NCBI RefSeq assembly: GCF_000143415.4
Contig: NW_003314469.1
Coordinates: 43,619-67,497 of the forward strand
Direction of reading: 5' to 3'
Length of the DNA: 23,879 nucleotides
From: Selaginella moellendorffii
Lineage: Eukaryota > Plantae > Lycopodiophyta
A program made the translations under genes and the position numbers. Every line of letters begins with the position of its first letter. The first letter of the stretch is position 1. This document shows positions 773 to 23,879 of this stretch, piece after piece. The notes under the pieces are model-generated. The model searched no databases, was not told the origin of the DNA, and saw only the letters and a list, made by a program, of their open reading frames with translations.

Positions 773-833
773 CTGCTGCTGCTACTGCTGTCATTCCGAC
801 TCCAAATCTCCTCTCTCTCTCCAGCCACTGCTG

Positions 834-1399: not shown

Positions 1400-1592
1400 T
1401 GGTTCCAGCCTTGAGCACCTGGAACAAACAGGAACTTTAAGCCTCGAAAGAGAATAGCGAAGAGCAAGAGAGTGAAAAACCTTGATTCTAGTCGTGGTTC
1501 CAGCCTCGAGAACCTGGAACAAACAGGGACTTGAGAGACCGGAAAGAAGAATAGCGACAAGCAAGAGAGTGAAGAACCTTGATTCTAGTCGT
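1400..1592. repeat. About 96-bp diverged tandem duplication covering the PKL-like stop and 3' UTR
   Basis: tggttccagcc...ccttgattctagtcgt occurs from 1400 and from 1495. Confidence 0.9.
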
Positions 1593-2339
1593 CGATGACA
1601 ACGTGAATCCCCTCGTTGTCCGAGACGTCGTCCTTCTTGTAGCTCCATCCACCATAGCCTCTTCACCTTTCACTCCCAATCCTCGTCGCATTTCCGAGCA
1701 GAGCATGTCGATCTGCTGAATGCACCTGCGCAGGTGGATGCTGGTGGATTTGTTCCCCGCATAAGTCTGGAAGGTGTCGAGCCTGTTCTCGCTGATCATC
1801 GAGCACAACTATGGCGACACAGAGAAAGCCGTGAGCCTCTCAAACCTTTGCAAATGGAGAAACAAACACAACCTCATTGTAATAGGCTGGAGCTTTCAGC
1901 CGCTTAGGATCGTTATCCAGTGCCGTTCCCAGGACTTCTTCCGGAGCTGTCCAAAAATGAACGCGTTAGAGTTTTTTCTAGTGTCTAAATCTAAGGAACT
2001 CACTCAAAGGTGTTGGATAAGGAACAAATGTGGGTTGCGGCTTTTGGTAGGAGGTTTTGGTCCCTCGCCAGGCTCGATGCCACCGTTGCTGCAATTGGCT
2101 GGAATATCTTGGTCATCCTGGAACATCTCAAGTTAGAATCGCAGGGATGACGATAGGGGGGTCAAGACTCTTTTACCAGATGATATTCTGCGTTGAGTAC
2201 TTTTTTCCATAAGTGTGACTCGTTTCTTCACGAACTGGATAATTCTCCTGTTGAAGAACGCTTCAGCGTCAGTTAAATGATTGTCATTTTCCGGTGCATG
2301 AGCTTTTGAACCTGAGAATGAACCAACTGGTGGCATCAT
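1585..2339 (-). pseudogene. PKL: PICKLE/CHD3 chromatin remodeler C-terminal fragment, copy 1 (longest)
   Basis: RRIIQFVKKRVTLMEK resembles PKL RRLVEFVKKRVLLLEK. ALDNDPKRL...YYNE, an intron, then CSMISENRLDTFQTY resemble the PKL C-terminal DNDPDRL..LYNEMC region. Frameshifted; stop at 1587-1585. Confidence 0.75.
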
Positions 2340-2375
2340 GTACAGCTGACTGTAGCCTTCTAAATCATTCCATCA

Positions 2376-2416
2376 AACACACACATCAAACACACACACA
2401 CACACACTCACAGAGG

Positions 2417-2481
<65 letters not shown>
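2376..2481. repeat. Compound microsatellite: CA-rich tract plus (AG)30
   Basis: Read directly; the AG run spans 2422-2481. Confidence 0.97.
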
Positions 2482-2484
<3 letters not shown>

Positions 2485-5400
2485 CTTCCTGCTAGCGATG
2501 ATCGACGCTCTCTCCTCGTGCTAACGCGCCCTAAAAGACAATTGAAAGTTTTTATGATCCCAAAAGTCACGGCTCTCCATTGTTTAATCTCAGCCGTTAG
2601 ATTTTGGCATATGCCCAGAATAAGTGTCGTCAGTATATGCCATTATTATACGAGCTCTTTCGTTTAAATATATGAGTATGACTAGCAGAGACCCCAGCTC
2701 CGTTGGGAGATATAGCATACCCAAGATAAATAGATCTTCTTTTCTAATTTTATTGTATACAAGGTTAAATTTATCAGATGCATTATAATTTATTATCAGA
2801 TAAATGATAAATCAGAAATCATAGATGAATTCTCAATAAAAAATTTAGTTATAATTCCATTGTTGTGAATATTCAAGTGACAATAGAAATGATGACTAAC
2901 ATATATTATTCCCCCTTTCAATTATATTCTGAGACTCTCACTCGAGAAGCTCTCATATTCAAAGCTTGATTTTAGATCTTGATATAGTTTATCTCTGGGA
3001 GGTATAGCATACCCAAGATAGATAAATCTTATTTTTCTAGTCTTACAGTTTTAGAAATTTTTCTTGTATATAAAGTTAGATTTATCTAAAATTTTTTACT
3101 ATTCATCTCAAGGGAAATGCACAATAATTCAAAAAGATAATAATGCAAGTGTTGGGGAAGATAAGATCATTTTTTATCATCATTAAATTTAAATTTGATG
3201 TTTTTATTACCTTTATAACATGGTGCACAACCCTAAACAAATCTACAGAATTGCTGCCATGCTTGAAAAACAATTGAGTTTTCACAAAAACAAAGAATCA
3301 TAGACTACCAAAAAATTAATAGGTTAGTATGAGAAATTATAATTTTAACTGCATACTGAGTTAAATTCTTTTTATCTGAACTATAATAATGCCTCTAACA
3401 TTCATAGTTTACTAAAGAATAATAGAATTTCTATTATGTGTCTGGTTTTACATTTTAAAACATACATAAATATCTATCTAGTTTGCTACCACATTTATAT
3501 TAAACCTCATAAGCTGAATGGTTTAGATTCTAGATTCCAGAGCAAACTAATATTCTCTTTTATATTCATCCAAAGATAATAATTACATTAGAGATATAAT
3601 TTTGTATTAAGACAAATCTGTATTACTGCTTGATGATAAAATTATAAATTCATTTCTGATATAAGATGTGGTATCTAATATGGTATAAGATATCTCATAC
3701 ACATACAAATATCAAATCAATTTCTTAATAATATCTGAAAATTTAGCAAAGACTTTTATATTTTTATTTAATCTTCTTGCTCATAACCTACTTAAATCTA
3801 TCGTCAGCTTTATATGAGTTTTATCTTTTGTCTAAATATTGAAACAATGATTTATTTTCTATAGTTAAAACGTATGCTTTATATAAGTCTAGCAAATATA
3901 ACTCCACTGGCAGACATAAAAATAATATTTTTAAAATACTTATATGAGATTTTTTATAAAATAAAATTATTAATACATCTATAATGCAGAACATAATTTA
4001 ACATAGATCAAGAGTGTGTAAGAAATTTTGTAACTTATAATATAAAAGATAACTACTATGAAATTAAAATGATGAAGAGACAAAATACTTGAGAAGGAAA
4101 AACATAGAAGAAATTTTTACAAATAAGAATTAAAAATGTTAGAAAGAGATTTCTAAATGAACTTCTCATGAAAAAGAGTTTCAGGTTAAACATTAGTAGA
4201 ACAACTTCCAATTAAATATCTAGATTGTTAGGAATAAATTTGAAAATATTAAACTAAGATTTCTCAAGATTATATTTAGATGATATCATCCTAGAAGTTA
4301 TGATTATAAAAGCTTATAGATGTTATGACTTTGAAAGCTTTAATAAACTCTGCAACCTGCAACAATTTTATTCAAGATTGTGTCTAGCCAACGGATTTTA
4401 AATTATATAAACATAAAAATTTTAAAAATTTCAGTTTAAATATAAAATTGAAATTAATATAATAAAACTGAAATTATCTAAATTATAACATGATTATAAA
4501 CAATTAAAGATTATATTAAAGATTAATTTTGTAAGAAAAGCTAGATCTAGCACTTAAATAATAGTATTATTATATTTTGTACATGTTACTATATTCAATA
4601 TAGTGAAATTTTATTATCAATGCTGGGAGAAATAAAAATTAAGGATTAAAGTCCCAGCTACATTGAGAGTATTGTGTTTATTTCTAATGTCTTAGTAATT
4701 TAAAAGAGTTGTAATTTTAATTTTAATTTCAAAAATATTCAAAATGATAACATATATAGTTAAACATAATATAATATTTATATTAAAATTCAATTCTATA
4801 ATTGACCCTATCACCAGCACATATCATAACATAATAAATATAGCTCATAGCATTATATTACATATAAAATTTTAACTGCTGAATGAAGTTTTGGATATTT
4901 TATAAATGGAATAGCTTACAATGGAATCCCATGGGCAGATGAGTCATTTAGAGATTGAGGTTAGGTAATTAATTGTTCCTTTTATTTTTAAACTATATAA
5001 TTGATAACAAAAAGTATTATTACTTGATGATTTATTCAACACTATAATTTTTACTCTTACTAAAGTAAGTGTTAATTAATTACAATAAAATATATTTTAT
5101 AAATTTAAAATTATAGACATTGTTATGGAGTTTAGTTTTACATCACTTCAAACTGAAAATTTTTAATTGCATTAAATGTTTTACTTTTATGTGTTTTACT
5201 TTATTTGAACTTTTCATTTTTTACATATTTGACTTCAGTATTTGCTTTTTTGTCTAATTTTTATATTTATGCATTTTGAGTGTAATATGTAAATTTAGAC
5301 CTATTATATTATATATTAGAAGGAATCATTTTGTATATGTGTTATATAGAGAGGCTTTATAAAGCTTTAATAATTTAAGGCTTTATAAAATTGTTTTAAT

Positions 5401-6092
5401 AATTTTTTTATTGCTTTAATAAATTGCTTAATAATAACTTGCTTAATAATTGCTTTAATAATTTAAGGCTTTATAAAATTGTTATAATGGCTGAAATTTA
5501 TATAATGATAAATGTATGGTAAGGTTTGACTCTATACTGGGCTGCAGATTCGATTATTTACAACCCTTTTCTTTATGCTAGAACAATAATATATCAGAAA
5601 ATTCATGAATAGTATATCGATACATTTCATATATGTAAGTTTCAATTGATGATGAATGAAATAAATCTTAGAATATATCTTAGGCATGACAACTCAATGT
5701 ATTTAATTTCCGTTATATATTAATAAGTACCATTAGATTACTGATAGAAACTAAATTATTATACAGAAGAAGCAGCTAAAAATATTAAGTTATCTATTTT
5801 AAGTTAGAATATATCATATTGTTATATACACTATTTTCTTCATATTATACTTTAAAATATTTTTATGATTTCGAATTCTATGTTTTCCAAAAATTACACA
5901 TAATAAATTCTCTATAAGTACATAGTATGTTATTTTATTTTTATAGTATTTTTATATTTGTATTTGACATCCTCCCCATTCATAGTATTTATATTCATAC
6001 TTTTAAGAGTAACTAATGAAAAGTTAAAATATTATATTATATATCATTATCATTATTTCTGTATATAGTTTTATATTAAGATAATGCTAATA

Positions 6093-6436
6093 NNNNNNNN
6101 NNNNNNNNNNNNNNNNNNNNNNNNNNNNNNNNNNNNNNNNNNNNNNNNNNNNNNNNNNNNNNNNNNNNNNNNNNNNNNNNNNNNNNNNNNNNNNNNNNNN
6201 NNNNNNNNNNNNNNNNNNNNNNNNNNNNNNNNNNNNNNNNNNNNNNNNNNNNNNNNNNNNNNNNNNNNNNNNNNNNNNNNNNNNNNNNNNNNNNNNNNNN
6301 NNNNNNNNNNNNNNNNNNNNNNNNNNNNNNNNNNNNNNNNNNNNNNNNNNNNNNNNNNNNNNNNNNNNNNNNNNNNNNNNNNNNNNNNNNNNNNNNNNNN
6401 NNNNNNNNNNNNNNNNNNNNNNNNNNNNNNNNNNNN
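6093..6436. other. Assembly gap (344 N)
   Basis: Run of N. Confidence 1.
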
Positions 6437-7169
6437 GAGAAATAGATCTTCTTTTCAATTTTACAATGTCAGAAATTATGCTTGTAAACAATGTTAAATT
6501 TATCTTAATTTTGCTACTATTCATCTCCAGAGAAATGGACAATAATGCAATTAAATAATAATGCAAATTTTGGGGAATATAAGATCATTTTTTAATCATC
6601 ATTAAATTTGAATTTGAAATTTTTATTACCTTTTTATTAAAAATTTTATTTGAATTTGATTTTTTATTGCAAGTAGAATAGCTTTGGTAGGTGTTAGTTC
6701 TGTTTAGATCATCATGCAACGATGCTGTTTCTTATTGATAAGTATTTTTGGTTTTTTTTTCTGTTTTGTATTCAAGCAAACATAGCAATAGCACAATAGA
6801 ATAGAGATTCTTGTATGTGCAAGTCACTCTTTTTTTCTGTTTTACTGTTTTCTGCCTGCACGTTTCCTTTTGAATGTTTTAAGCGTTTTTAGGATTGTGA
6901 TCTAGAGCGACATATAGACTTTTTTGTTTTTTAGCTAATACCTTTACGAGAGAGAGCAAAACACTAAATAAAATCAAACACGGAAATCATTTCTATGCCC
7001 TGAGTTAATGTACAAATATCATGTACTGAATCAAACCAAGCTCATGGCTTCAAAGGTGTGTCTATAAACACGTACATACACAACAGTTGTCTTATTCCTT
7101 CAGAAATGGCTTTTTTAAAAACAGTTCATGGCTTTGTCTGTAAGAAAGTAGAGTAGGCTGCCATGTAGA

Positions 7170-7395
7170 GCTCCAATCCTTGTTCTCCACCACCTCAGCT
7201 GCCATGTACTTCGCTGTTGTGATATCTCCTAAAGGTGCTGATCACCACTTTCTCGCACATGTTTAGCTTGGAAAGAATGTTGTCGAGCTTGAGATCCTGG
7301 TGACCCACGCCTCTCAAATAAATCTATTTGAAAGTCTTTACCAGCTGCTTGATGATTCTGGCTGCTTTCTCCTCACCAATCTTCTTGCAAATATG
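7170..7395 (-). pseudogene. Ser/Thr protein kinase fragment (CAMK/CDPK-like, subdomains VI-VIII)
   Basis: EEKAARIIKQLVKTFK*IYLRGVGHQDLKLDNIL (degenerate HRDLK..NIL); after a frameshift, TAKYMAAEVV (YMAPEV). Contains an internal stop. Confidence 0.75.
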
Positions 7396-7432
7396 CTATA
7401 TTTAAAAGACCACATAATTATGGAATAACGCC

Positions 7433-7950
7433 TTAAGAAATGAAGGCAATATTTCCACCAATGAACGTAACCAATCGAGGAAAAATGCCCGTGCCCCGTC
7501 CAAAATGAGACTCAGACAACACTACAAAGTCGGCAAACTTTCCTTGCGTCAGCGACCCAACCAAATCTTCTAATGCAGCTGAATACACAGCCGAGGATGT
7601 GTACCTGTGAATCCAAAAACACGAACTGCATTTCAGTTTTGTCATCTGTTTTCTCTTACCCTGCCACTGCGTCCCATGCAGAAATCCTTTCCTCGGGAAT
7701 CCAGGGATGACTCCAGCCCGAAGGTGTTCTCTCCATGGCAGTGCAGATCCCTCCAACTGGATTCACGGCTACCACCTTGAGACAAACCATTCACGTAACG
7801 CCAAAGAAAAAGTAATTGACAGGCTTACAGGCCAGTCGGATCCTAACCACGCTACCGTTTTCGAGGGACCAGAGGTTATAAGATCCGCATGAGTGCCTTC
7901 TAACCAAATTTCTTCACGGCGTAGTAAGCATCATCTAGAAGTTGCTCTGG
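7433..7950 (-). pseudogene. LAF3: Amidohydrolase_3 family (LAF3-like) C-terminal three-exon fragment
   Basis: Exons PEQLLDDAYYAVKKFG*...LGSDWP | VNPVGGICTAMERTPSGWSHPWIPEERIS | YTSSAVYSAALEDLVGSLTQGKFADFVVLS, with GSDWP and GSL.PGK.ADFV.LS-type motifs. Confidence 0.8.
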
Positions 7951-8026
7951 CTGTACAAAAATATAGGGTTTTGCAATGGAGGCAAAATGCAGGTCTACTG
8001 GTCGATGCGCACAATGCATGGTTTCT

Positions 8027-9551
8027 TCAGATTCCTCTCTGCTCGGTTTGGCCTTTACTACGGCCTTTTGGACGTCCTGTGGTTTCCTTCTGTGATGTTT
8101 TCCTTCCTGGCGTTAGAGAGTAACTGAGGATCAAACGAAACAAACCTCGCCATGTAAGATAGCACTGCCTGAGCAAAGCCAGGCTTGTACGAGAAGAGCA
8201 GCCCATGGAAGAGCTTCCCATCGATGGAGGCTTCTAGTTGAATACGTCGCTTACTCTAGCCTTGAACATCTTCTCGCCTAGTGGCTGAACGTGAGCTTGA
8301 AACTCTGTAGCATGAGTTTGACAGGGAAATATTGGAGAGGTCCAAGGTTTTCCACAGATACCTCCGTGAGATGAAACCAAGCTCTTGTCCGCATCCCGTT
8401 GCTTGTCTAGCATGAATGGCGTGGCACGATACTCTTGCTGCCTTCTCTTAAGTTCCTTACGCATGGATAGCTTTGGTTCTGATGGATCTTTCTCCCTCAG
8501 CATCTCTTCACAGAAAAACGGCAACCATATTGTCAAGAATGGCAGCAATGTCAATAAAAGAAGAAGCCAACCTGTGTCGAGGAAATACATGTCATCCAGA
8601 GCTTCAAGCTCTTCGTTACATCCCCCATAGAAGAATAATATGCCTCGCTCTGCGTTCACAGAATCTCCTGCAAGGGAGAAACGTGGAGAAGGCCCGGGAC
8701 CAGAGGGATTCGAAGTCGCCCAAACACCAGTCGCTACAAAATACATAAAAGCCCCATGAGAGACCAACAGGAAACAAATCTACCTACAAGCGCACGTACT
8801 TAAGTCAAGAGTATGGACGTCATTGAATAGCTTGCGATCATCGGAGAATCCTCCAAACACGACAAGATACTTTCCATGGCTGATTGTTGTGTGCCCGGCT
8901 CTTGGCATCAGCTCGGCACCAGTCGTCTTTACCTCCGCCATGCCATTGTTTCTGGAAACGCAAATGAATTCGCAAGTTTAAAACCAGCACAATGTATGTA
9001 CCTGTGTCCAGAATATGAACATCGTTTAGATAGGCATTACCACCGTCCTCGCCACCCATGACAACGAAACAGTTCTTAAGGTATGGCTATCCCGAGAAAT
9101 AGGCGAGACTCCAGTGGTAGAAATCTTCTTCCAGACAAAAGTATCTACAGGGAAAAAAAAAGTTTAGAAGAAAACAAGGAAAGTTAACAGAATATTACTC
9201 GTGTTCAAAACATGGAGGTCGTTGTAGTACTCCTCCTCTGAGGGATCGCTGGATTTCCCACTTCTTCCAAACATGAACAGGTTGTCACCGATGAGAGACG
9301 TGCTATGTCCTTCTCTCAAAGCAGGAACATCACCGAAGTGTTGGTAGCTGCATCGGATGATAAGAACAAGAAAAAAAAATCGATAGAACTCGGAGCTTAC
9401 CAGTATCCAAAACAAAGAGTATGATTGAGCGGGCTGGTTCCATCGGTACCACCAAACACATGGAGCTTAGACCCGACGGCCATTGAGCTGTGGCTGTCTC
9501 GAGGAGAAGGGTGCGTTCCTTTCATCACAGGCTTGCTCCAGGTGTACATCC
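8027..9551 (-). pseudogene. Multi-exon kelch-repeat (galactose oxidase/kelch superfamily) gene, 5'-truncated, copy 1
   Basis: Kelch motifs PSPRDSHS, VFGG, GGEDGGNAYLNDVHILDT and PRAGHT with short GT-AG introns. Starts at an intron acceptor. Deletions near 8237, 9078 and 9337 relative to copy 2. Confidence 0.85.
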
Positions 9552-9588
9552 CTGCGCGATCCCACCAGAAGAGTGAAGAACCTTGATT

Positions 9589-10259
9589 CTAGTCGTCGAT
9601 GACAACGTGAATCCCCTCGTTGTCCGAGACGTTGTCCCTGTCATGAGCTCCATCCACCATAGCCTGTTCGCCTTTCACTCCCAATCCTCGTCACATTTCC
9701 GAGCAGAGCACGTCGATCTGTCAAATGCACCTGCGCAGGCGGATGCCAGCGATTTTTTTCCCAGCGTAAGTCTGGAAGGCATCAAGCCTGTTCTCGCTGA
9801 CCATCGAGCACAACTATGGCAACACAGAGAAAGCCGTGAGCCTCTCAAACCTTTGCAAATGGAGAAACAAACACAACCTCGTTGTAATAGGCTGGGACTT
9901 TCAGCCGCTTAGGATCGTTATCCAGTGCCGTTCCCAGGACTTCTTCCGGAGCTGTCTAAAAATGAATGCGTTACAGTTTTTTCTAGTGTCTAAATCGAAG
10001 GAACTCACTCAAAGGTGTTGGATAAGGAACAAATGTAGGTTGCGGCTTTTGGTAGGAGTTTTTTTGGTCCCTCACCAGGCTCGACACCGCCGTTGCTGCA
10101 ATTGGCCGGAATATCTTGGTCATCCTGGAACATCTCAAGTTAGAATCGCAGGGACGACGATAGGGGGGTCGAGACTCTTTTACCAGATGATATTCTCAGT
10201 TGAGTACTTTTGCCATAAGTGTGACTCTTTTCTTCACGAACTCGGTAATTCTACGAACT
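9589..10259 (-). pseudogene. PKL: PICKLE/CHD3 C-terminal fragment, copy 2
   Basis: Close match to 1585-2243; RRITEFVKKRVTLM; in-frame stops. Confidence 0.75.
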
Positions 10260-11527
10260 CTACAAACAGAGACAAATCCCTTCCTAGGGTTAGAAATAGG
10301 ATAAATGAAACGTACCATCTACATATCAATCTGCAAAGCATACTTAAGCAAAGCATTCCCTCCCAGTCGATGGAGCGGTTGCAAATCTAGAATTGAAACA
10401 GTACCTCCCATATTGCCATCTTGGCCGTCTATATCAATCGTCACAGATTTGGACAGTCAGATTAATAGTATCTACCATAAGTAAAAATGGATATTCTTAA
10501 AATAGAATATGTGACGCCGATGCCAAAATAGCAACTTTAAATAAAGAGTTTGACTAGCTGGGATCCCAGCTCCGCTGAGAGAAGTACAAAATATTTTGGG
10601 CACATTGAATTTTTAAGCATTTTAGCGTCAAGAGTAAGCATTTTAATATTAATTTTAAAATAATCAGTTGAAAGTTATAGTTGTAAGCTCTAGAAAGAAA
10701 GGCTTTGTAATTAATCAAAACTGGCTTCTTTTATTTTACAAGTTTTGTGCTTGAAATGAAAGCAAATGCCTTTCTAAATTCATCATCCTAGAGATGGAAC
10801 ATATGATATCCATAATTAAAAGTTACAACATCTACTTGAAATCTTGATATCAAGGGAGGGTGTTCTAGCATAACCCACTTGGTTTTAAATCAAAGGAAGA
10901 TAAAAACAGAAGTGTTCAAAGGCTTGCTTTTTATTCTAGATTTCCTGTCCAAGTTTTAACCAGTGAAGTTCTACAGAATCTTAGATTTTTTCAGTGACTT
11001 ACTGTAAAGTGGCAAGAAGAAATTGAAGAGAGGTGGTGGAAGTTTAATGAGGACCCAAGCAGCTTTATTCTACTCAACATGGATATTGAGTTCAGAGTCA
11101 TTGCCTTTGGAACACATCAAAGTCAGCCTGGGGGTTCTACTTGCAGAGGAACTTCTTGCATGCTCTCTTTTGATCACAAAGCATTTGATGTTAAGAAACT
11201 GCTAAAAGAGAAAAAGAAATGCAAAATCTAAGACATAATAGTGTTAGGCCATAAAATATAACTTTTTGACCAAAGCAATGCTGATAAGTGAGATCTGTGA
11301 ATTTTAGTTTCCTGTTGTGCATACTTGAAAATTTGAGAGTTAAGAAATCCAGATTATTATAATGCAAGAAAGAGCCAGACCATATAAAGTGAAAAAGAGT
11401 TGGACTTTTGTAAATCTTTGACGAAGGCAACACAGATACATGAGACCTGGTGACTCTTTAATTTTCAAACCCGCAGGGAGAACAGAGGTAAGATTCCTTC
11501 CAAACCATGAAGAAAAATCACAAATGC

Positions 11528-12140
11528 ATGGCTTGCACTCTCCTGCTCTTGCTTTTGGTTGTGCCTGCCATTGTTTTTCTAGCCCGCCATCACCAACACC
11601 GTTCAGCCAAACAAAACCCAACAAGCAAAGAAGCTCTGGAAGTGTGGGACGAAGTCTCCAAGCTCTCACAGCATGATCTTAAGTGTCTGGCACTCTTCAT
11701 CTCCCCACTCACCACAATCTCCACCAAAACCTATGGATGCCTGCCTCCATCCCCAGCTGGAAGCCATCCCCAAACTTCCAACACTTGAGCCCTCCTCAGA
11801 CTCCAAAGCTTGGGGTCCAGTGTACAAGGAAGACACCACCTCCGCTAACAAACACCTTATGGTTGTGTTCCGGGGCACCTCCACCCAGGCAAACACATGT
11901 GTCAATTGGATCCTGTTTGGAGAGCTACCAAGGACGTCACTTACAAGTCTGAGCTCTTGCCTCTCCACCTATTCCAACCAGACCTCGACTACATCTCCCA
12001 CAATGTGAGCTACACACACCAAGTTGTGGAGGTGTGTCCAAACGCATCGCTTCTACTCATTGGTGCCAGACTCACAGTTCTCATCTAGGCATCGCTCGAT
12101 GGACTTGCTGCTGTTGTTGCTGTCAGCAGCCTGGGAGCTG
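11528..12140 (+). pseudogene. Probable class-3 lipase (ATG15-like) fragment, opposite in orientation to the element
   Basis: Hydrophobic N-terminus MACTLLLLLLVVPAIVFLA, then LMVVFRGT, then VCPNASLLLIG...ASLDGLAAVVA (degenerate GxSLGG). Spread over several frames. Confidence 0.45.
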
Positions 12141-12423
12141 GAGGCTCGCTGCAGTTGTGGTCCTTTCAGCTCTCTTACAAGATGAATCGTAATATGGCTG
12201 TGATTGGAAACGGGTGGGATTCCGTGTTCACGGTGTCATGGGTTTCCCCATGTCATTAAATTCCCCGTATTCCTTTTACAAAAAAATAACTGAAACAATA
12301 GGGCTTACCATCGTGTTAATTCCTAGAACACACGTTTTTCAATTTTTTTTACACCAATTCATACACTTCCTGTCACCCTCAGAATAGATCTTGGATCCTT
12401 ACAAGTTGTTTAGTGGTGATCCG

Positions 12424-12864
12424 TCATGAGAAGGGAAGAAGGAAATAAATAAGATGACCCCTAAGTGATCCAGAGAATTTACTAAACGATGTGTTCTGTA
12501 AGATCTTGAGATTCGAGAGAGTTACGCAAGAATCCAACGCCGAGATGAGTGTCAGCTTGTCCGATTTCACTCCCTGGAGTTGCATATGAATGAATACTCT
12601 GGCAGCCGAGCGATCGTCGTCACAGCAAGAGAAAGAGGACAGCAGCCCATTCCAAAGAAGAGCACTGTAGCCACCGGAAGAGAAAGAGACTTGATCAAAA
12701 GCTTGTCTCACTTCGTCCAGGCTTCCACAGGCCCTGTATGCGTTCATAAGAGCTCTCCCCAAGACCTTGTCGATCTCCACGCCACTATCTCTCACAGCTT
12801 CGTGGATCACTCTCGTCTGATCCAGTCTCCAGCAAGCATCTAGCATTGTCACAAAGGTCGCCAT
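12424..12864 (-). pseudogene. PLS-class pentatricopeptide repeat (PPR) fragment
   Basis: ATFVTMLDAC, ALMNAYRACGSLDEVRQAFD, WNGLLSSF and MQLQGVKSDKLTLISALDSC; only 2-3 motifs, no E/DYW domain. Confidence 0.88.
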
Positions 12865-13541
12865 AAAGATGAATTCAAGCTTGCTGAACTTCTTTTTATT
12901 ATACAGCCTTCATGTAAAATTAGATCACATGTTTTCCTCTTTCTTTTGCCACCCATTGATCTATAGGAGATTTTACAATCTCTTTTAGAAATAGAAGCTT
13001 AGACAGCGTGTGCAGGCTCTAGATGGTGATAATAAGTAAATAGACAAATAGCCAGACCACAAGAAAATAGAAGCACACTGAATGTTGCCCTTAGGACTTT
13101 CTAATTATCTCTCAGAGAACACAGAAACAAAATTACCTCTTGACAAATGCATAAGGCAACCTAATTGTGTAGTTCTTTTTTCTATGATTCGAAACAGTTT
13201 TTCTTAACCTACGTGTCTATTAGTTACACTCTCAAAAAGCCTTTGACAGTAAAGAGGTTTACCACAGCTTTTTAAGGTAATATTGTGACATTGTAATAAT
13301 CTTTTCTAATATTGTGATAAGTGATTAGAGGAAATAACATCCCCTTCAACCACGACATCAGAAATGTGAACTTTGCAATTTGTTTGATTCTAACATACAG
13401 TTGCCATCATAGTCCCATAAACTAAATGTGCCCAGAGGCAATGTGATCCCAGAGCCAGCCAACGCAGATCCTAGGCTCTGCCCTTGATGCTCATGGCAAT
13501 CCGCTGCAATTGGAGGGAAAAGAGAAAAAACTCAGTTAAAA

Positions 13542-13927
13542 CTGGATCTTACAAGTACAAAACAAAACAAAGAAAAATGCTACCTGTACACTGGTTTGGA
13601 GAGCTTGATCAACGTATTTTAGTGGTTGTTTCTCCATTTGAAGAGTTCCCCTGCAGGATAAAAGTTTATTGCTAAGCAAACATGAGTCGCAATCTGCAAG
13701 GAAAAGGTCAATTTAGAAAGCAAGATCAATCCCCTGGATCTTACAAGTACAAAACAAAAAAAAGAGAAAATGCTACCTGTACACTGGTTTGGAGAGCTTG
13801 ATCAACGAATTTTAGTGGTTGTTTCTCCATTTGAAGAGTTCCCCTGCAGGATAAAAGTTTATTGCTAAGCAAACATGAGTCACAATCTGCAAGGAAAAAG
13901 TCAATTTAGAAAGCAAGATCAATCCCC
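13542..13927. repeat. About 192-bp tandem duplication containing a small minus-strand exon-like segment
   Basis: ctggatcttacaagtac...caagatcaatcccc starts at 13542 and 13734; the copies are near-identical. Confidence 0.95.
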
Positions 13928-14079
13928 GAATCTCTCTTTCAGCACATGCGCAATTAACCTGTTCAAAAGATCAGTGCAAGTTTTAAGTCAGAAATATCAC
14001 ATTGTTTCTGCTGATTATGACGCTCTTATCCGTGCTCTTCATGGCAAAATACTGGCAGGAACCTTTCAACTCTACTAAA

Positions 14080-15356
14080 TGTACACTTGCATCACAAAAA
14101 GGCTTTTTCATCCCATATATAAGAAACGACTATGAAAAAACTCACCTTCCTGTGTTACCACAACCAAGAGATTTGACAGGCCGAAAATGGTGGAGTCAGT
14201 TTCTCGCCACTAGTTTGAATCTGCATTTAAAACAAGCAAGAAAACTGGAGAAGTCATCAGACTAAACATGCGCTCATGAATCTTTCTAATAGCATCCCAA
14301 GAGTTTAGATAAACGACTTTAGAGTGTTTAGCCCGAAGGTTGTTGGTTGTCTGGACACGAGCAAAAGAAAAAAAATTCTTGAACTCCCAAACAGCCCTCT
14401 GTTACTCGCTCCTGCACAACAAGAATCAAGTTAGCCACAGAGATCAAGAGAAATGAGAGATCATGCTAAAACCTAGATCCATATGCATGCTGGGAATCTT
14501 GTTGCAAGCCCTTGGCGTGACAGGATGAGAGATCCAGGAGCACCAGGCAGTCTCTTTGTTGCTTGATCATATATGAGCTGCCCAAGCACGTACTCCTTGT
14601 TGTACATAATAAGAGGCAGTAAAATATGCACATGTAAAGAAGCACTGAGAATATGCATACATCTGAAGCAGGTCTGCAGCTGCATCATGTCTTGACAACA
14701 CTGTCACCTCCAAACCTCGCCGCATATCTCTGGCCTAAAGAAATCGTCAACAAGAACAACACAAGAAAGAGAAAACGTACCATAAAATTCACAGTCTCTT
14801 GATCTTCCAAAGTCATATCAAACAATGACATGACCACTGAGTGGGTATAAATATTTTTCCTTTGACAAGACTGTATGACACACACAACATGGCGAACAGG
14901 AGGGATTGTACACTTGCATCACAAAGAGGCTTTTTAATCCCATAAATAAGAAACGACTATGAAAAAACTCACCTTCCTGTGTCACCAAAATCAAGAGATT
15001 TGACAGGCTGAAAATGGTGGAGTCAGTTTCTCGCCACTAATTTGAATCTGCATTTAAAACAAACAAGAAAACTGGAGAAGTCATTAGACTAAACATAGGC
15101 TTATGAACCTTTCTAATAGCATCCTGAGAGTTTAGATAAACGACTTTAGAGTGTTTAGCCCAAAGGTCATTGGTTGTCTGGACACAAGCAAAAGAAAAAA
15201 AATCTTGAACTCCCAACAGCCCTCTGTTACTTGCTCCTGCGCAACAAAAACCAAGTTAGCATTAGAGATCAAGAGAAATGAGAGATCAGCCATACGCATG
15301 CTGGGAATCTTGTCGCAAGCCCTTGGTGTGACAGGGTGAGAAATCCGGGAGCATCA
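14080..15356. repeat. About 450-bp direct duplication (about 14080-14545 and 14908-15356) around unidentified exon-like sequence
   Basis: Both copies run from tgtacacttgcatcacaa to ...gcaagcccttgg.gtgacagg.tgaga.atcc.ggagca. Confidence 0.92.
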
Positions 15357-15503
15357 GCCAGTGGGGAAGTCATCACGGAGCTGGAGATTGTGTTCTTCAG
15401 ACTGTCCGCCATTGACCTGTGCATCTGTTGCGAATGGCAATGAACAATCAACAATCCAGCCTTTTGCAAAGGGTACGCACACTCCTGCTGCTGTGTTCAC
15501 CAC

Positions 15504-15505
<2 letters not shown>

Positions 15506-15585
<80 letters not shown>
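15506..15585. repeat. (GA)40 microsatellite
   Basis: Read directly. Confidence 0.98.
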
Positions 15586-15589
<4 letters not shown>

Positions 15590-15835
15590 AGCTTACAATC
15601 TGCCTGAGTCCTAAAAGATTCACTTGATTTGGAGGGTCATTCAATTCAAAGTTGAAGCGTTGCCACCCCTTTGGCACTTGATCTATGCCATCTATTTGAA
15701 GTTTTTGAATTTGAGCTGTTAGATTATAAGTATATTCAGAAATAATATTCTAAAAATGGAATAAAAGATGCCGGATGCCATATGCCAATAGCATGTTTAA
15801 ATAAGGGGGTACTATCAGAGACCCCAGCTCCGCTG

Positions 15836-16743
15836 GGAAATATAGCATACCTAAAATAAATACATCTTCTATTTTAATTTTACAATGTTAGAAATTTTGA
15901 TTGTATACAAGGTTAAATTTATCTTAATTTTGCTACTCTTCACCTCTAAAGAAATGCAGAACAATGCAAATAGATAAAAAATGCAAGTTTTGGAAAACAT
16001 AATATCATTTTTTCATCATCACTAAATTTAAATTTGAATTTTTTTATTGCCTTTATAAAAAGATACAAAAACCTAAACATGTCTACAAGATTGATGCCAT
16101 GATTTAAAATCAATTGATTTTTCACAAAACCAAAGAATTATATACTGCCAAAAAAAAAGGTTTGGGGAAATTATTTTTTGATTACATACTAAGCTTTTTT
16201 TTTTATTTATCTGAACTATAATGCTGCCTTTAACTTTCATAGTCTAATAAAGAACAAAAGAATTTCTATTATGTGTCTTGATTTATATTTACAAATAAAC
16301 ATAAGTAAATCTATCTAGATATTCACACTACATTAGAGGTGTTTGAAAAGAGGTACATCCAAAGATAATAATTATATTAGAGATATAATTGTATTAAGAC
16401 AAATCTCTACTAATGCTTTATAACAAAACTATACATTCCAATTTATAAAAACATTACTATTGAATGATTACACACTACTTACTCTTCAGCAATTATATAA
16501 AGAAGAATATGATTGCAGATTAATATATTATATAAAAATATTAATGTTTTAAATATAAACATGGAGATAACATTAATATGTACATATTAAAATTAATTTT
16601 TTAATCTATTTGCATTATTGTGCATTTCTTTAGAGGTGAAGAGTAGCAAAATTAAGATAAATTTAACCTTGTATACAATTAAAATTTCTAACATTGTAAA
16701 ATTAGAAAAGAAGATGTATTTATCTTAGGTATGCTATATCTCC
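15836..16743. repeat. About 147-bp inverted repeat (15836-15982 and 16596-16743)
   Basis: The reverse complement of 16596-16743 matches the 3'-subterminal sequence of D with few mismatches. Confidence 0.93.
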
Positions 16744-16872
16744 TACTTTTAATTTTACCTGGATATTTAATTTTGCTATTTCTTTTTCCTTTAACTCTTC
16801 ATCCTTGATGTGCTAAAAGTTTTTCTGAAAACCTTATTATTGTAAATAACTCTTCCAGAGAGTAATTGCAAG

Positions 16873-16875
<3 letters not shown>

Positions 16876-16921
<46 letters not shown>

Positions 16922-16988
16922 GTTCTCATTTTGTTTTATTATTATCATGGGATAATAAAAGTTTTATTATTATCATGGGATAATAAAA
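16876..16988. repeat. (TA)n microsatellite followed by a 28-bp tandem duplication
   Basis: TA run 16876-16919; gttttattattatcatgggataataaaa at 16933 and 16961. Confidence 0.95.
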
Positions 16989-18906
16989 TAGTGCTTATTA
17001 TTGACATTATTACTATTTTCTGAACACTATAATGGTGAATGATATAATGGATTTTCTTTGCTTACCAGAATTAAATCTGTATTGTCATAGAAGTGTTAGA
17101 ATGTCATTATGTGTGACAAATTTCCATTTTTTATTACTGCTCTAATCCCAATTTCCAATGCATGCCATTAATATTACTGCATTAGTAATAGAACTATTCA
17201 GTATCTACATTATCAATAATTAAAAAGCTGTATTATTTGAATTTATCTGGATTATTGTGATATTTTTTAATATCATCATTTAAATTAATCAGGGGAGGAC
17301 CCTAGCATAAATTCTAACTTTTTTTTTTCTTAAACCTATCTGCTATTTGTAAGATATGTTGTTTCTCCTTTTTCTCAATCTATTTTTAATTTTTATCGTG
17401 CTCATTGAATAGCCCACCACTTGATAAGACTTAACACCCAAGGAACTTCATGTGCTTGGATGTACCAGCAAGGACTCCTTAGCTTATGGAACTGCAGAAG
17501 GTAGCTCAATTTTTTCTTTCATATCCAAGAAGAAGCTAGCAAAGCTTTTTCTTGTAGTTTCTTAAGTCTTCAAGAGTAGTGTTTTCTACAAAAATAATGA
17601 TATTTTTGAGATATCCATAAGAATTGCATGTTTGGAATATATACATCACCAAAGATTTCTCTAAATAACAGAAAACAAATTACTTTCCAATATAAATACT
17701 ACTATGTTTTTCATAAGATTAGCAACCTTCCTTATTCTTTCTTGCTTCAAATGCCAAATCCATTATATGTTTTTTCTCTAAAATCCTTCTTTAGGCCAAC
17801 TATCAACTTCTTATTTTTCTACTTACTACAAGGTCTCATCTTTTCACATTTGCAATAATGTGTTAGCTTGGACTATTGAAATAGGAGATTGTGATCTTAG
17901 GATACCATTATTTGCACGAATTTATGATGTTAGTTTTTGCAGCAGTGGATTGTAACACATTTGTTAAGGACCCTTTCATAATAAGATTGAAATGGTGACC
18001 TTTGTGGCCCAAACTCATGTTTCTATGCTCCCTGCCACCACAAGCCATTCTAAGGAGGCTCCTGAATCTAGTGTCAAGCAATGCAACTGATGTTAGATCT
18101 CTTCCTCTTGCAAGGATATGTGTCTGTCTGGGTATTCGCAAAGGTGATGAATCCAATTCTATTCTTCTTCCACATTTTGTCTTGGGTGATTCATTATTTG
18201 CTTTCATTGTTTGAGAGTGAAGTGGCAAGAGACTGACTTTTTTTTATGAAATCTCTGCTTGTGTAATTCTGTCTTTGTAAGCATTGTTTTGTAGTCAAGC
18301 AAAGCCACAAAGGCTACAACAGGCAGTACAATGTACTCCTATTTAACTATTTATTAGAACAAGAAAATATCATACTACACCTTACTATTTCTCATTCCCT
18401 AGACATTCCTCAGATGCTGCTCATAGAATTCCAGAAGCTGTAACTTGACTCCATAAAACATGAAAGAAGCAGTGAAAAAGTACCTTTCATAGTTTAAAGG
18501 TTTTTTCTCATTATTGAAAGATATCCAGAGGAGGTTAACACTTCAGAGCCTCACAAGCGCCTCATAAATTGCCCTTAAAGAGATGGTGTTCAGTTCTATG
18601 GTTCTTTAAGAATACCTACCAGTTTGACTCTGTCTTGAACATGTCGTCATTAGGTCCATTGGAGAAAAGGGTAACCATAAATGCAGAGTTTTTATAAATA
18701 GTGTTTCCTTCGAAATACAGAAGCGACAGAGATGAATTAGAACAGTGGAGGACATAGCATATCATCTAGTATGAGGTACAATTCAGTAGAATACTTTTTT
18801 CTTTTTTAATTACAGAAGTTTTGAAACTCTTACAGAATAGTCTGGATGTGGCCTAAAGAAGAAATTTTGTATGAAGGAAAGTTTGTATGAAATTGGAAAT
18901 GTTTAT

Positions 18907-19332
18907 CTTCACTTTCTCAAGCACATCATGGATTTTTCTTTAGGAAATCAGCCACATGATGACATGAGCTGTTGAGTTGTGACCAGCGTTCATGTACATG
19001 TTGAGCATGTCTATGATATGAGCGTCTTCCAGCACCTCTTTTTTGTCATCCAGCTGATCCATGAGCAACGAAAGAATGCTTGCTTCCTGCGGGTTTCCAG
19101 AAGCGCTGGTTGATCACGTCCTGGATAAGCTTGATGAGCTTTTGCCTCGGCCTGAAAATGAGAAAACGTCACAAAGCTATGTACAACGCATATGGCTTTG
19201 TTGTAGGCAGTGCCGAGGAAGTTGATGGGGAGAGCCTGAATGCCTTGGTTGACAATGTAGTAGAAGGAGAAAGTCTCTTCCATGTCAAGACTGGAGTCTT
19301 TCCCATATAAAATGTAGAGGACAGTTAGAAAC
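18907..19332 (-). pseudogene. CYP88: Cytochrome P450 internal fragment, CYP88/ent-kaurenoic acid oxidase-like
   Basis: VNQGIQALPINFLGTAYNKA, an intron, then RQKLIKLIQDVINQR...LEDAHIIDMLNMYMNAGHNSTAHVIMW, which resembles the CYP88 I-helix IIDVLLMYLNAGHESSGH..MW. Frameshifted; no heme-binding motif. Confidence 0.78.
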
Positions 19333-19334
19333 GT

Positions 19335-20816
19335 TTCCTCCTGTGATGTTTTCCTTCCTGGCGTTAGAGAGTAACTGAGGATCAAACAAAACAAATCTCG
19401 CCATGTAAGATTGCACTGCCTGAGCAAAGCCAGGCTTGTATGAGAAGAGCAGCCCATGGAAAAGCTTCCCATTGATGGACGCTTCTAACGTGTATCCGTA
19501 GTTGAATATGTCGCTTACTTTAGCCTCGAACATCTTCTCGCCTAGCGGCTGAACATGAGCTTGAAACTATGTAGCATGAGTTTGACAGGGAAAATTGGAG
19601 AGATCCAAGTTTTTCTGCAGATACCTCCGTGAGATGAAACCAAGCTCTTGTCTGCATCCCGTTGCTTGTCTAGCACGAATGGCGTGGCATGATACTCTTG
19701 CCGCCTTCTCTTAAGTTCCTTACGCATGGATAGCTTTGGTTCTGATGGATCTTTCTCCCTCAGCATCTCTTCACAGAAAAACGGCAACCATATTGTCAAG
19801 AATGGCAGCAATGTCAATAAAAGAAGAAGCCAACCTGTGCCGAGAAAATACATATCATCCAGAGCTTCAAGCTCTTCGTTACATCCCCCATAGAAGAATC
19901 ATATGCCTCGCTCTGCGTCCACGGAATCTCCTGCAAGGGAGAAACGTGGAGAAGGCCCGGGACCAGAGGGATTCGAAGCTGCCCAAACACCAGTCGCTAC
20001 AAAATACGTAAAAGCCCCATGAGAGACTCACGTACTTAAGTCGAGAGTATGGACGTCATTGAATAGCTTGTGATCATAGGAGAATCCTCCAAACACGACG
20101 AGATACTTTCCATGGCTGATTGTTGTGTGCCCGGCTCTTAGCATTAGCTCCGCACCAGTCGTCTTTACCTCCCGCCATGCCATTGTTTCTGGAAACGCAA
20201 ATGAATTCGCAAGTTTAAAACCAGCACCATGTATGTACCTGTGTCCAGAATATAAACATCGTTTAGATAGGCATTACCACCGTCCTCGCCACCCATGACA
20301 ACGAAACAGTTCTTATAGAAAGAGCAGGTATGGCTATCCTGAGGAATAGGCAAGACTCCAGTGGTAGAAATCTTCTTCCAGACAAAAGTATCTACAGGAA
20401 AAAAAAAAAGTTTAGAAGAAAACCAGGAAAGATAACAGGATATTACTCGTGTTCAAAACATGGAGGTCGTTGTAGTACTCCTCCTCTGAGGGATCGCTGG
20501 ATTTCCCACATCCCCCAAACACAAACAGGTTGTCACCAATGAGAGACGCGCTATGTCCTTCTCTCGAAGCAGGAACATCACCAAAAACGTCGGGTTTCCC
20601 CTAGGTGGTGGTAGCTGCATCAGATGGTAAGAACAAGAAAAAAAATTGATAGAACTCGAAGCTTACCAGTATCCAAAACAAAGAGATCGTTGAGCAGGCT
20701 GGTTCCATTGGTACCACCAAACACATAGAGCTTAGACCCGACGGCCGTTGAGCTGTGGCTGTCTCGAGGAGAAGGGTGCGTTCCTTTCATCACAGGCTTG
20801 CTCCAGGTGTACGTCC
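19335..20816 (-). pseudogene. Kelch-repeat gene, copy 2
   Basis: Paralogous to 8085-9551. Keeps the segments deleted in copy 1 but has a TAG at about 20602-20604 where W is expected, a shortened intron near 20027 and a truncated 3' end. Confidence 0.85.
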
Positions 20817-20853
20817 CTGCGCGATCCCACCAGAAGAGTGAAGAACCTTGATT

Positions 20854-21525
20854 CTAGTCGTCGATGACAACGTGAATCCCCTTGTTGTCCGAGACGTTGT
20901 CCCTGTCGTGAGCTCCATCCACCATAGCCTCTTCGCCTTTCACTCCCAATCCTTGTCGCATTTCTGAGCAGAGCACGTCGATCTGTCGAATGCACCTGCG
21001 CACGCGGATGCCGGCGCTTTTTTTTTCCAGCGTAAATCTGGAAGGTGTCGAGCCTGTTCTCGCTGATCATCGAGCACAACTATGATGACACAGAGAAAGC
21101 CGTGAGCCTCTCAAACCTTTGCAAACGGAGAAACAAACACAACCTCGTTGTAATAGGCTGGGACTTTCAGCCGCTTAGGATCGTTATCCAGTGCCGTTCC
21201 CAGGACTTCTTCCGGAGCTGTTCAAAAACGAACGCATTAGAGTTTTTTCTAGTGTCTAAATCGAAGGAACTCACTCAAAGGTGTTGCATAAGGAACAAAT
21301 GTAGGTTGCGGCTTTTGGTAGGAGGTTTTTTGGTCCCTCGCCAGGCTCGACACCACCGTTGCTGCAATTGGCCGGAATATCTTGGTCATCCTGGAACATC
21401 TCAAGTTAGAATCGCAGGGACGACAAAAGGGGGGTGGAGACTCTTTTACCAGATGATATTCTCTGTTGAATACTTTTTCCATAAGTGTGACTCTTTTCTT
21501 CACGAACTCGGTAATTCTACGAACT
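20854..21525 (-). pseudogene. PKL: PICKLE/CHD3 C-terminal fragment, copy 3
   Basis: RRITEFVKKRVTLMEKVFNREY; near-identical to copy 2. Confidence 0.75.
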
Positions 21526-21821
21526 CTACAAACAGAGACAAATCCCTTCCTAGGGTTAGAAATAGGATAAATGAAACGTACCATCTACATATCAATCTGC
21601 AAAGCATACTTAAGCAAAGCATTCCCTCCCAGTCGATGGAGCGGTTGCAAATCTAGAATTGAAACAGTACCTCCCATATTGCCATCTTGGCCGTCTATAT
21701 CAATTGTCACAGATTTGGACAGTCAGATTAATAGTATCTACCATAAGTAAAATTGAATATTCTTAAAATGGAATATGGACGCCGATGCCAAAATAGCAAC
21801 TTTAAATAAAGAGTTTGATGA

Positions 21822-23879
21822 CTAGCAAAAGTCCCAGCTACGCTGGGAGCATTGTCTTTATTTTGGATATTTTAATAATTTCAAAGAGTTGTAAGTGTAA
21901 TTGTAATTTTAACATAATCATAATTATAAGATATATAGTTAAACATAACATAATCTTTATATTAAAAATCTCTTCTACAATTGATTCTATCACCAACACA
22001 CATCATAACATAAAAAATATAACTCAGTACATTGTATCATATTTAAAATTCTGATTGTTGAGTGAAGTCTTGGATATTCGATAAATGGAATTTCTCGATG
22101 AGTCATTTGTTTAATAACTAATTTTTTCTTTTATTTGAAATCTCTATATAATTGATAAAATATTATTATTTGATGATTTATTAAACTCTATAATTTTTCC
22201 TCCTAATAAAGTATGTGTTACTTAACTACACTCAAATATAATTATGTTAAAAATATGTTTATTATATATTTAAAAACTCAGCTAAAGTGTATACATATTT
22301 TAAATTAAAAAAATATAAACATTATTATGGAGTTTCTCTTTTCATCATTTCAGACTGAAAGTTTTGGAATTGCATGATAATAAGTGAAAGATGTTAGCTT
22401 TATGTGTTATATTTTCTTTTATAAAATTATAATATTTTACATATTTATCATTGATATTCCATTTTTACCTAATATTTATATTCATGCATTTTGAGAGTAA
22501 TATTTAAAATAGAGAGTATTCTATTATATATCATAAACATTATTTCTGTAGTTATTTTTATAAATCTGAAATAAGATTATTATCTCCCTATATTCTTGTA
22601 TTTATATTTAAAATTAAGGCTTTATAACACTGTTATGAATGCTGAAATTTTATGATGATAAATGAATGGTAATGTTTTACTCTATACTGGGGTAGAGGAG
22701 GGTTTGATGATATATAAACTTTTCTTTATGCTAGAACTATAATATATCAAAAAATTCATGAATGGTAGGTTTGATATAATATAATTAAATTTATTTATAT
22801 GGTCCATGTACTAATGTTGTCTCAATCATATTTATACCTTATTAAGTTTTTCATGTATAAATGCAATGTAGGATAAAGTGGTAGAAAATTTATGATATTA
22901 TATAAATCTTTGGCTACATCTTAGCCAATTGACATCTCAATATGTTTAATTTCATTTATATTTATATTAATAAATAACATAAGATTACTAATAAGAAAAT
23001 ATTTTAATAATAAGAGATAAATAATAAGAGGTAGGTAGTGCTAGGAATTGCAAGAGTGAGAGGAGGGTTGTCATGGTCAGGAGCAAATCAACACCAAGAA
23101 AGCTAGGGTGAAGATCAGGTGTGGCTTTCCTTTGCAGTTAATAGAGTACGAATTGATCCATGAAGAATTGGATGAAGAATTGCTGTAGATTAGACTTTAT
23201 AGAATAAAAGTAATATTAGTCTATGGAAAAATTGTTATTAGTATTTGAAAAGACCAGTTTGACATAAAAGGATCAAAATCATCATGTTCCAACTGTCATG
23301 CATGCAAAGTGTTCCATCAAAGAAGCAACAGGCTGCTGAGGACTACCTTGTCCAACTCTTTGCAGCCATCAATTTATGTGCCCTTCATAGCAAAAGAGTC
23401 ACAATAAGTCAGTATTCAAATAACACACACAAAAAGATTATAGAATTTATCAGCCAGCTTGAAAATTATACATTTAGGCTGTCGGCTTAGAGGAACCTTG
23501 GAGCATTTCATTTGGTACTACATTTCTTTTTCTTGCAAGTTCACTTAGAGTTTACCATGCAGCTTATACTTATTGATTAGAATCCTCAATTTTTCTTAGA
23601 AAATTGCTGCTACTTTCAGGCATAAATCGCTGTTAATTTCAGGCATCCTCAACCACATATTTTTTGGGAAATTAAATTTAGTATCAGCACAAAATCTGAC
23701 CTGGAAAGAGATGTAATTAAAAGTAAAAGTAAAATAAACATACTTTTACTAATAAGAAAATATTTTACACAACAGATATTTAGATCTATTAACTCCTCTA
23801 TTTTAAGTTATAAAATATCATATTTTTATAGAAAATATTTTATTTATATTGTAATTTAGATATTTTATTTTTTATTTAT
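21822..23879 (-). mobile_element. 3' part of Helitron-like element E (continues beyond the window)
   Basis: CTAG at 21825-21822 and hairpin tcccagc-tac-gctggga (21832-21848). The AT-rich body is homologous to about 4648-5830. Confidence 0.75.
23073..23500 (+). pseudogene. CENH3: Histone H3-family fragment, most like centromeric CENH3
   Basis: MVRSKSTPRK at 23073; AG/GT-bounded exon 23332-23407 encoding AAEDYLVQLFAAINLCALHSKRVTI; then CRLRG near 23480. AAEDYLV and these intron positions fit plant CENH3 better than canonical H3 (AAEAYLV). The central histone fold is missing. Confidence 0.68.

Follow-up and report, generated by a model that had tools for sequence, protein, structure and literature searches.

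How do Helitrons of different kinds come to stand tail to head, with no spacer between them? The question is raised by a stretch of 23,879 nucleotides (nt) of the lycophyte Selaginella moellendorffii (contig NW_003314469.1), called the window below. Textbook features of Helitrons include TC...CTAG ends, a 3' hairpin and a cargo of gene fragments. An earlier note on this DNA, made from the letters alone, had read the window as a stack of such elements in which each newcomer inserted at the 5' end of a resident. Our analysis leads to a wider reading: the window is probably a tract of non-autonomous, gene-fragment-carrying Helitrons of related subfamilies that were connected by Rep-mediated, end-directed joining and re-copied as composites.

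The reading starts from three intact junctions, all on the minus strand (2682/2681, 10554/10553 and 21822/21821). At each of them, a 3' end is directly joined to a 5' end, exactly at the coordinates first proposed and without spacer. The 3' side consists of a 15-nt hairpin CCCAGC-NNN-GCTGGG (CCCAGCGGAGCTGGG-like, with a stem of 6-7 base pairs and a 3-nt loop), 7 nt and CTAG. This is the 3' signal common to the elements, i.e., the hairpin keeps its place 7 nt before CTAG across subfamilies and scaffolds. The pattern is found at 4 sites of the window compared to 0 in 100 shuffles. The folding of the hairpins is modest (-2.2 to -7.1 kcal/mol), with z-values of about -2.2 to -2.3 for two of them and weak values for the other two. 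On the 5' side, CTAG is followed by TCATACTCATATATTTAAAC at 2681, TCAAACTCTTTATTTAAAG at 10553 and TCATCAAACTCTTTATTTAAAG at 21821; all three start with TC and show TATTTAAA 8-13 nt further in. A fourth junction (15812/15811) is degenerate and reads ATAG followed by TACCCCCTTATTTAAAC, i.e., a TA start and then TATTTAAA. The 5' signal common to the elements is T[C/A]..ACTC..TATTTAAA, after which the 5' types K, G and G' carry GCTATTGGCAT. A further motif is observed ~85-90 nt inside three different 5' types (AATCTAACGGCTGAGATT / AATCTAACAGCTCAAATT / AATCTGACTGTCCAAATC; window ~2590-2600, 15720-15735 and 10455-10470, minus strand), such that the conservation of the 5' terminus spans ~110 nt and reaches beyond the first 20.

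For comparison, we use the window together with eight S. moellendorffii loci from assembly GCA_000143415.2, in total 150,635 nt, in which free 5' ends were detected with a core-motif scan. The retrieved loci show 75-99% DNA identity to pieces of the window. This sample contains 18 hairpin 3' ends with a CTRR-like terminus, of which 15 end in CTAG and the rest in ATAG, TTAG or CTAT. Joining is frequent: in this biased 150 kb sample, 12 of the 18 terminated 3' ends run into a 5' end either directly (0 nt) or across the trinucleotide TCA, which is far above chance and bears out the tail-to-head joining claimed before. The other 6 are free, and 4 of these are followed by T (mostly CTAG and then T). 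Conversely, free 5' ends follow an A in 3/3 independent cases (L003 12314, L005 2754 and a Z-type end at L004 12890/L006 2074). Among the 5' ends, ~11/16 start with TC (window 2681, 10553 and 21821; L004 2019; L010 4863 and 16689; two copies in L005; L003 12314; the Z-type ends). The hairpin+CTAG and TC ends named in the earlier note are therefore confirmed as Helitron termini. When all CTAG sites are considered, 11 of 768 have TATTTAAA within ~7-24 nt, and a 3' end precedes all 11 of them; the hairpin is full in ten cases, and in the remaining one (L005) an N gap reduces the end to a remnant. Given the density of the motif, we estimate that well under one such case would be expected by chance among the ~17 hairpin ends. 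At the very tip of the 5' ends, TCA is variable in fused and free ends alike (TCA+TACTC vs. TACTC, TCA+TCAAACTC vs. TCAAACTC, TCA+TCCTTC vs. TCCTTC; window 2681, 10553 and 21821; L004 9570; L005 2757 and 7496), which suggests that the 5' terminus slips by 3 nt or is alternatively cleaved.

The junctions combine end types in diverse ways, with 9 distinct pairings in the sample, such that simple identical concatemers can be dismissed, as the earlier note had done. The K-type 5' end stands behind four different 3' types (window 10554 and 21822; L004 2018; L010 16717). The 3' end type T3b is followed by a K, G or W 5' end or by host DNA (L002 9634), and T3a by a U1, G' or K 5' end or by host DNA. 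Likewise, the 3' 1.7 kb of the unit that is fused at window 10554 (U3, see below) ends free in L002 at 94% identity, with CTAG followed by TTTTC. Since free 3' ends and free 5' ends both occur, both are real termini that were joined repeatedly and independently. That is, both kinds of ends are genuine termini with canonical flanks (TC after A, T after CTAG) and have been joined many separate times. The termini, the precision, recurrence and independence of the junctions, and the free ends are direct observations.

It could be objected that TC..TATTTAAA extends the upstream element on its 3' side or serves the captured genes as a promoter, i.e., that a junction is an internal module. TATTTAAA indeed resembles a TATA box, less sensitive early scans saw the motif only behind 3' ends, and two homologues without the core exist. 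However, the 16-nt 5' core agrees in every case with the sequence downstream of the joint and never with the upstream partner, such that the core belongs to the downstream element; for the core type this holds across four upstream partners. Furthermore, free copies after A are present, free 3' ends stop exactly at CTAG, and the 5' region is common to elements with different cargo. The objection is thus largely refuted, and we regard it as very improbable. A related candidate, a promoter of the small nuclear RNA type formed by TATTTAAA and the downstream motif, was dropped, since the motif spans different cargoes and always marks a similarity boundary. An Rfam scan of the window gave no match, i.e., the arrangement of hairpin and TATA-like motif is not a known small-RNA gene.

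Along the window, at least five units in 24 kb are arranged as follows (from right to left, i.e., in the reading direction of the minus strand).

21822-23879, minus strand: 3' part of a Helitron with T3b tail, hairpin 21833-21847 and CTAG 21822-21825; continues past the right window edge.
15812-21821, minus strand: unit B, with K-type 5' end (TCA+TCAAACTC..TATTTAAA, 21821 to ~21710), kelch gene fragment and T3a 3' end.
16589-16743, plus strand: inverted T3a sub-terminal copy of 155 nt, 92% complementary to 15836-15990 and cut within the hairpin (pseudo-end).
10554-15811, minus strand: unit U3, with G'-type 5' end TACCCCCTTATTTAAAC, (GA)n at 15506-15585, PPR fragment at 12424-12864 and internal duplications.
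6644-10553, minus strand: body of unit C, with K-type 5' end (10553 to ~10444) and kelch element body from 10553 to 6671.
6437-6643, minus strand: T3a-like sub-terminal piece, whose last ~46 nt (hairpin, CTAG), if present, lie inside the gap.
6093-6436: assembly gap, with flanks from different element parts.
4648-6092, minus strand: T3b-like tail, with a degenerate hairpin at ~4650-4670 and without CTAG.
2682-4647, minus strand: T3a-type piece with an intact 3' end, hairpin 2693-2707 and CTAG 2682-2685.
1-2681, minus strand: unit D, with U1-type 5' end TCATACTCATATATTTAAAC, (GA)n at 2422-2481 and kelch-family 5' region from 2246 to 1566; continues past the left window edge.

The T3a end of unit B has its hairpin at 15823-15837 and a mutated terminus ATAG at 15812-15815, and unit U3 ends with hairpin 10565-10579 and CTAG 10554-10557. 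The single orientation described in the earlier note holds for all intact ends of the window; the 155-nt inverted fragment at 16589-16743 departs from it. Together with 15836-15990, this fragment could be taken as the inverted arms of a miniature inverted-repeat transposable element with terminal inverted repeats. We dropped this reading of the T3a region, since the inverted copy is cut in the hairpin like other pseudo-ends. Another part of the earlier description has to be replaced: the stretch from 10553 to 2682 is no single unit but a composite of at least three pieces, namely the kelch body, a T3a-like piece that runs into the gap with the T3b-like tail behind it, and the T3a-type piece. 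Its leftmost piece (2682-4647) includes a second T3a copy (2995-3481) whose last 21 nt are missing, and is colinear with L004 8112-9568 and with L010.

The gap itself lies in AT-rich, non-coding surroundings, where reading frame is irrelevant. Its right flank (6437-6643) copies the region ~47-243 nt inside the T3a 3' end (matching 15858-16054), and its left flank (up to 6092) is a different 3' body like 21828-23866. As the flanks are discontinuous with each other, the gap probably hides a 3' end or a junction. At the equivalent place, the paralogue in L004 has an end that is truncated in the hairpin and lacks CTAG, and a gap follows there as well. Further gaps at L004 7286-7551 and 16100-16338 and at L005 7376-7475 are, like the one in the window, at or near expected Helitron ends or junctions, such that junction counts from the assembly are likely underestimates.

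We also compared the neighbours with each other. At three of the four window junctions they are unlike in 5' type, 3' type and cargo, in contrast to the homogeneous concatemers known from bats. To this extent the claim that neighbours differ in termini and cargo stands. It has to be restricted for the kelch units: 10553 to 8082 (unit C) and 21818 to 19333 (unit B) share their 3'-end type and 93.5-93.8% identity over 2.5 kb (98% for the initial 300 nt), and the region from 2246 to 1566 of the leftmost unit shows 92.5% identity to the kelch bodies of both. The unit placed between the two kelch units (15811 to 10554) is unrelated, with its G'-type 5' end, PPR fragment and own 3' end. For the T3b tail next to the K 5' end at 21822, homologues of 21822-23879 are found in four other loci (L002, L003, L004 and L006), each 3' of a kelch body and in the same orientation. 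The T3b-to-K junction could therefore be a same-family, concatemer-like joint.

The joints are exact to the bond that Rep cuts and are repeated between unlike partners, which argues for a Rep-mediated, end-directed reaction; the involvement of Rep is what we infer from them. In such a reaction, units would be joined 3' end to 5' end at the exact phosphodiester bonds cut by the Rep nuclease, and this would have happened many separate times with different partners. The nick site of a resident (the 5' A^TC or the 3' CTAG^T) would become the integration site for another Helitron. Neighbours would later be re-copied together as composite blocks, via read-through of internal 3' ends or segmental duplication, and the same multi-unit blocks and pseudo-ends would thus appear on other scaffolds. 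Taken alone, the junction sequence fits three versions alike, i.e., insertion at A^TC, insertion after CTAG and strand joining before integration.

Insertion of a newcomer at the A^TC of a resident 5' end, as put forward in the earlier note, would let arrays grow upstream, with the most upstream unit being the youngest. The canonical A^T target is kept, as the resident supplies the T, and the donor site that is recognised and nicked by Rep is exactly this one (PMC5876387). The K 5' end behind four different 3' ends also agrees with it. For comparison, Du et al. (2008, BMC Genomics 9:51, PMC2267711) describe a precise junction between two unlike Helitrons in maize and discuss both insertion orders for it, including this one, where AT consists of a host A plus the first T of the resident. 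They also report maize lines with the upstream element alone, for which insertion after CTAG is the simplest explanation, the other being insertion at A^TC followed by clean excision. That is, growth at A^TC needs an extra step to explain the maize lines, and it predicts the same junction sequence as the opposite order.

In the opposite order, the newcomer integrates directly after the CTAG of the resident (G^T beside the hairpin) and arrays grow downstream. The order-informative case is L005, where positions 1-2757 and 10252-7496 form an inverted duplication of a W-type element with 99.96% identity over 2757 nt, whose edge is exactly at the Helitron 5' end. These near-identical copies differ only upstream of that end: one follows a host A, the other a diverged 3' end that lies beside a 100-N gap, 20 nt away. 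Here, a young element stands behind an older-looking 3' end, which favours a newcomer after a resident CTAG and speaks against insertion at A^TC. For the near-perfect palindrome, one explanation is a pair of insertions of very recent date and the other is an assembly error that connected two haplotypes, such that L005 is a single case beside an N gap in a possible misassembly. Insertion after CTAG is also the simplest reading of the maize polymorphism (PMC2267711), and arrays could start from short fragments with only a 3' end; in the sample, recognisable 5' ends are fewer than 3' ends and pseudo-ends. On the other hand, it requires a non-canonical G^T target. Given these observations, L005 and the maize lines lean to the order opposite to the one originally proposed; still, we consider downstream growth a possible but rather doubtful account and upstream growth unlikely. 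Our own version leaves the order open, i.e., the Helitron nuclease of this lycophyte would prefer resident-end nick sites (CTAG^T and/or A^TC) for integration. Such end-homing by a eukaryotic HUH transposon would build polar arrays, from which read-through would generate new chimeric elements with combined gene fragments. We propose this version tentatively, as a possibility that falls short of being probable.

The third version avoids resident targeting altogether. Here, Rep would join the 3'-OH of one strand displaced during rolling-circle transposition to the tyrosine-linked 5' end of another, and the pair would integrate as one. Precise joints of right to left terminal sequences (RTS-LTS) are made by Rep in vitro and in cells (PMC5876387), composite blocks recur, and the T3b-to-K joint at 21822 may be of this kind if it connects members of the same family. 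The 9 pairings would, however, need unlike elements to be mobilised simultaneously on many occasions, and the same 3' and 5' ends are also found free. We consider such hetero-concatemers quite improbable as the general explanation.

The number of junctions may also reflect copying, i.e., a few founder junctions that spread by read-through (3' transduction) and segmental duplication. Colinear multi-unit blocks are found in L002 and L004. The region from 12242 to 4667 of the window matches L002 6273 to 13841 with the K 5' region replaced, and the region from 3890 to 2422, with the 2682 junction inside it, runs colinear with L004 8112 to 9826. The earlier note had named recurrence of the whole array as one fixed unit as an outcome against its model, and the L002 match realises this outcome in part. 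As multi-unit blocks are copied whole, part of the junction count is copying and not fresh joining. In L001, L003 and L006, T3b-to-G junctions share only 24-40 nt past the joint, i.e., the 5' modules behind T3b are short before the copies diverge. Internal 3' ends are often mutated or cut in the hairpin (ATAG at 15812; ~4650; 2995; 16743; L004 6698; L002 13850). What speaks against copying as the main source is that at least 9 different pairings are left after collapsing copies and that CTAG is intact at 3/4 window junctions (2682, 10554 and 21822). This view overlaps the others and excludes none of them; as the explanation of the junction count, we hold it to be unlikely.

Two side observations concern the edges of such blocks. 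A (GA)n microsatellite is located ~200-230 nt inside several different 5' ends (window 2422-2481 and 15506-15585; L004 9767-9901; L003 11769-11789), and the homology to other copies switches there; e.g., the U1 5' end and (GA)n are followed by a kelch body in L004 and by another continuation in the window. The (GA)n thus looks like a recurrent mosaic breakpoint. Moreover, window 1-116 and L002 9638-9753 are 98% identical over 116 nt. The L002 copy starts right after a free T3b 3' end (CTAG followed by TTT), while its counterpart in the window continues upstream into the body of the unit, i.e., this homology edge in L002 is another breakpoint exactly at a Helitron end.

Several observations weigh against Rep-mediated, end-directed joining with later re-copying. 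The loci were picked via paralogues of the kelch and PPR cargo, such that the sample is small, biased and Helitron-rich throughout. Among the retrieved loci, an allelic haplotype or empty site for the window is absent. The 5' ends are not uniform: 5 of ~16 start with TA (15811, L001, L003 6249, L004 9570 and L006 5106), and the spacing between CTAG and the ACTC core varies (T, TCAA, TCAT, TCATCAA). Two 5'-region homologues, L002 2645 (G type) and L003 11975 (U1 type), lack the 16-nt core as well as an upstream 3' end. The T3b-to-G junction is seen three times and T3a-to-U1 twice, and some junctions may stem from a few copied founders. Finally, no Rep/helicase open reading frame (ORF) was noticed among those of the window, ten of which were scanned against Pfam, with no search directed at RepHel.

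With regard to the two homologues without core, the first ~15 nt (ACTC..TATTTAA core) are missing and TCATGGA precedes both. L010 is another mosaic paralogue and no allele of the window, as its 99% identity covers only 291 nt. An inverted-repeat scan linked no 5' end of a unit to its 3' region in the manner of the asymmetric terminal inverted repeats of Helentron/Helitron2-type elements. In addition, Helitron ends cluster in opposite orientations (L001 13497-13823; L002 313-401; L003 6200-6275), where convergent 3' ends are separated by 24-39 nt and a stretch of 330 nt holds four ends. Insertions seem to be drawn to Helitron ends in other arrangements as well as in the exact head-to-tail one.

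The cargo is reflected in the base composition, which alternates between blocks of ~45% and ~20% GC. On the minus strand, the GC-richer blocks contain short exons with introns between them and pieces of kelch repeats, PPR and amidohydrolase-like sequence; the kelch exons were searched singly and unjoined. Within unit C, intron-containing kelch exons span 8234-9549 and an amidohydrolase-like fragment 7433-7756. Kelch and PPR are supported as cargo by the Pfam scan of the ten ORFs, in which the amidohydrolase match is weak. A kelch ORF of 177 amino acids matches only S. moellendorffii proteins, namely 12 from many scaffolds with 33-90% identity, and the PPR ORF matches one S. moellendorffii protein at 97%. 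That is, the 'genes' of the window are multi-copy captured fragments. An exact look-up of ten window ORFs gave no match in the collection searched, and a metagenome scan with the hairpin+CTAG pattern gave three chance matches of 60-64% GC and no plant-like sequence. Within the cargo of two units, we also observe internal direct duplications of 87-96% identity (14080-14551 vs. 14907-15362; 13542-13741 vs. 13734-13933; 1397-1495 vs. 1492-1592).

How does the tract compare to known systems? The maize pair (PMC2267711) is alike in that unlike Helitrons with different gene fragments meet with CTAG directly followed by TC, at a G/T junction. It differs in being a single pair with polymorphism data, whereas here a lycophyte shows at least five units in 24 kb and 12/18 fused 3' ends. 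The tandem arrays of Myotis lucifugus (Pritham and Feschotte 2007), as described in PMC2267711 and PMC5876387, are perfectly head-to-tail and share the precise transition from CTAG to TC with no host A between units. According to the same two sources, they are taken as repeats of one element, in agreement with rolling-circle concatemers, in contrast to the mostly different subfamilies of neighbours here. Rep makes and re-cuts precise RTS-LTS junctions (PMC5876387, 2018). These represent the same covalent joint and provide end joining or end targeting with a biochemical basis, but they are episomal and connect an element's own ends, while the present joints are chromosomal and between different elements. 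In maize, Helitrons that have several termini (Dong et al. 2011, PMC3288121) contain internal pseudo-3' ends without intact CTAG (e.g., CTAT) and composites that run from an upstream 5' to a downstream 3' end. The recurring blocks and mutated internal 3' ends of our sample match this multiple-termini/read-through behaviour. There, nested insertions explain the termini, in contrast to the end-to-end arrangement with mostly intact CTAG found here. Maize Helitrons also insert preferentially near other Helitrons (Yang and Bennetzen 2009, as cited in PMC12477314); the clustering is alike, although the preference cited there is regional and the association observed here is precise to the single nucleotide. 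Our literature search yielded no paper on Helitron arrays of Selaginella. The Selaginella tract is thus a new and unusually dense example of a known phenomenon, with two-thirds of the sampled 3' ends being fused.

The public assembly of S. moellendorffii reportedly holds both haplotypes, which would make the species convenient for reading the order of arrival from presence/absence alleles. Little is understood so far about the target choice of Helitrons and about the way in which their chimeric gene-fragment cargo is put together. If the tract reflects only local copying of a few composites, it would be an ordinary Helitron-graveyard structure. If resident ends are indeed integration hot spots, head-to-tail arrays would be a natural substrate for chimeric transposition from the 5' end of one element to the 3' end of another, and target choice would be tied directly to exon shuffling.

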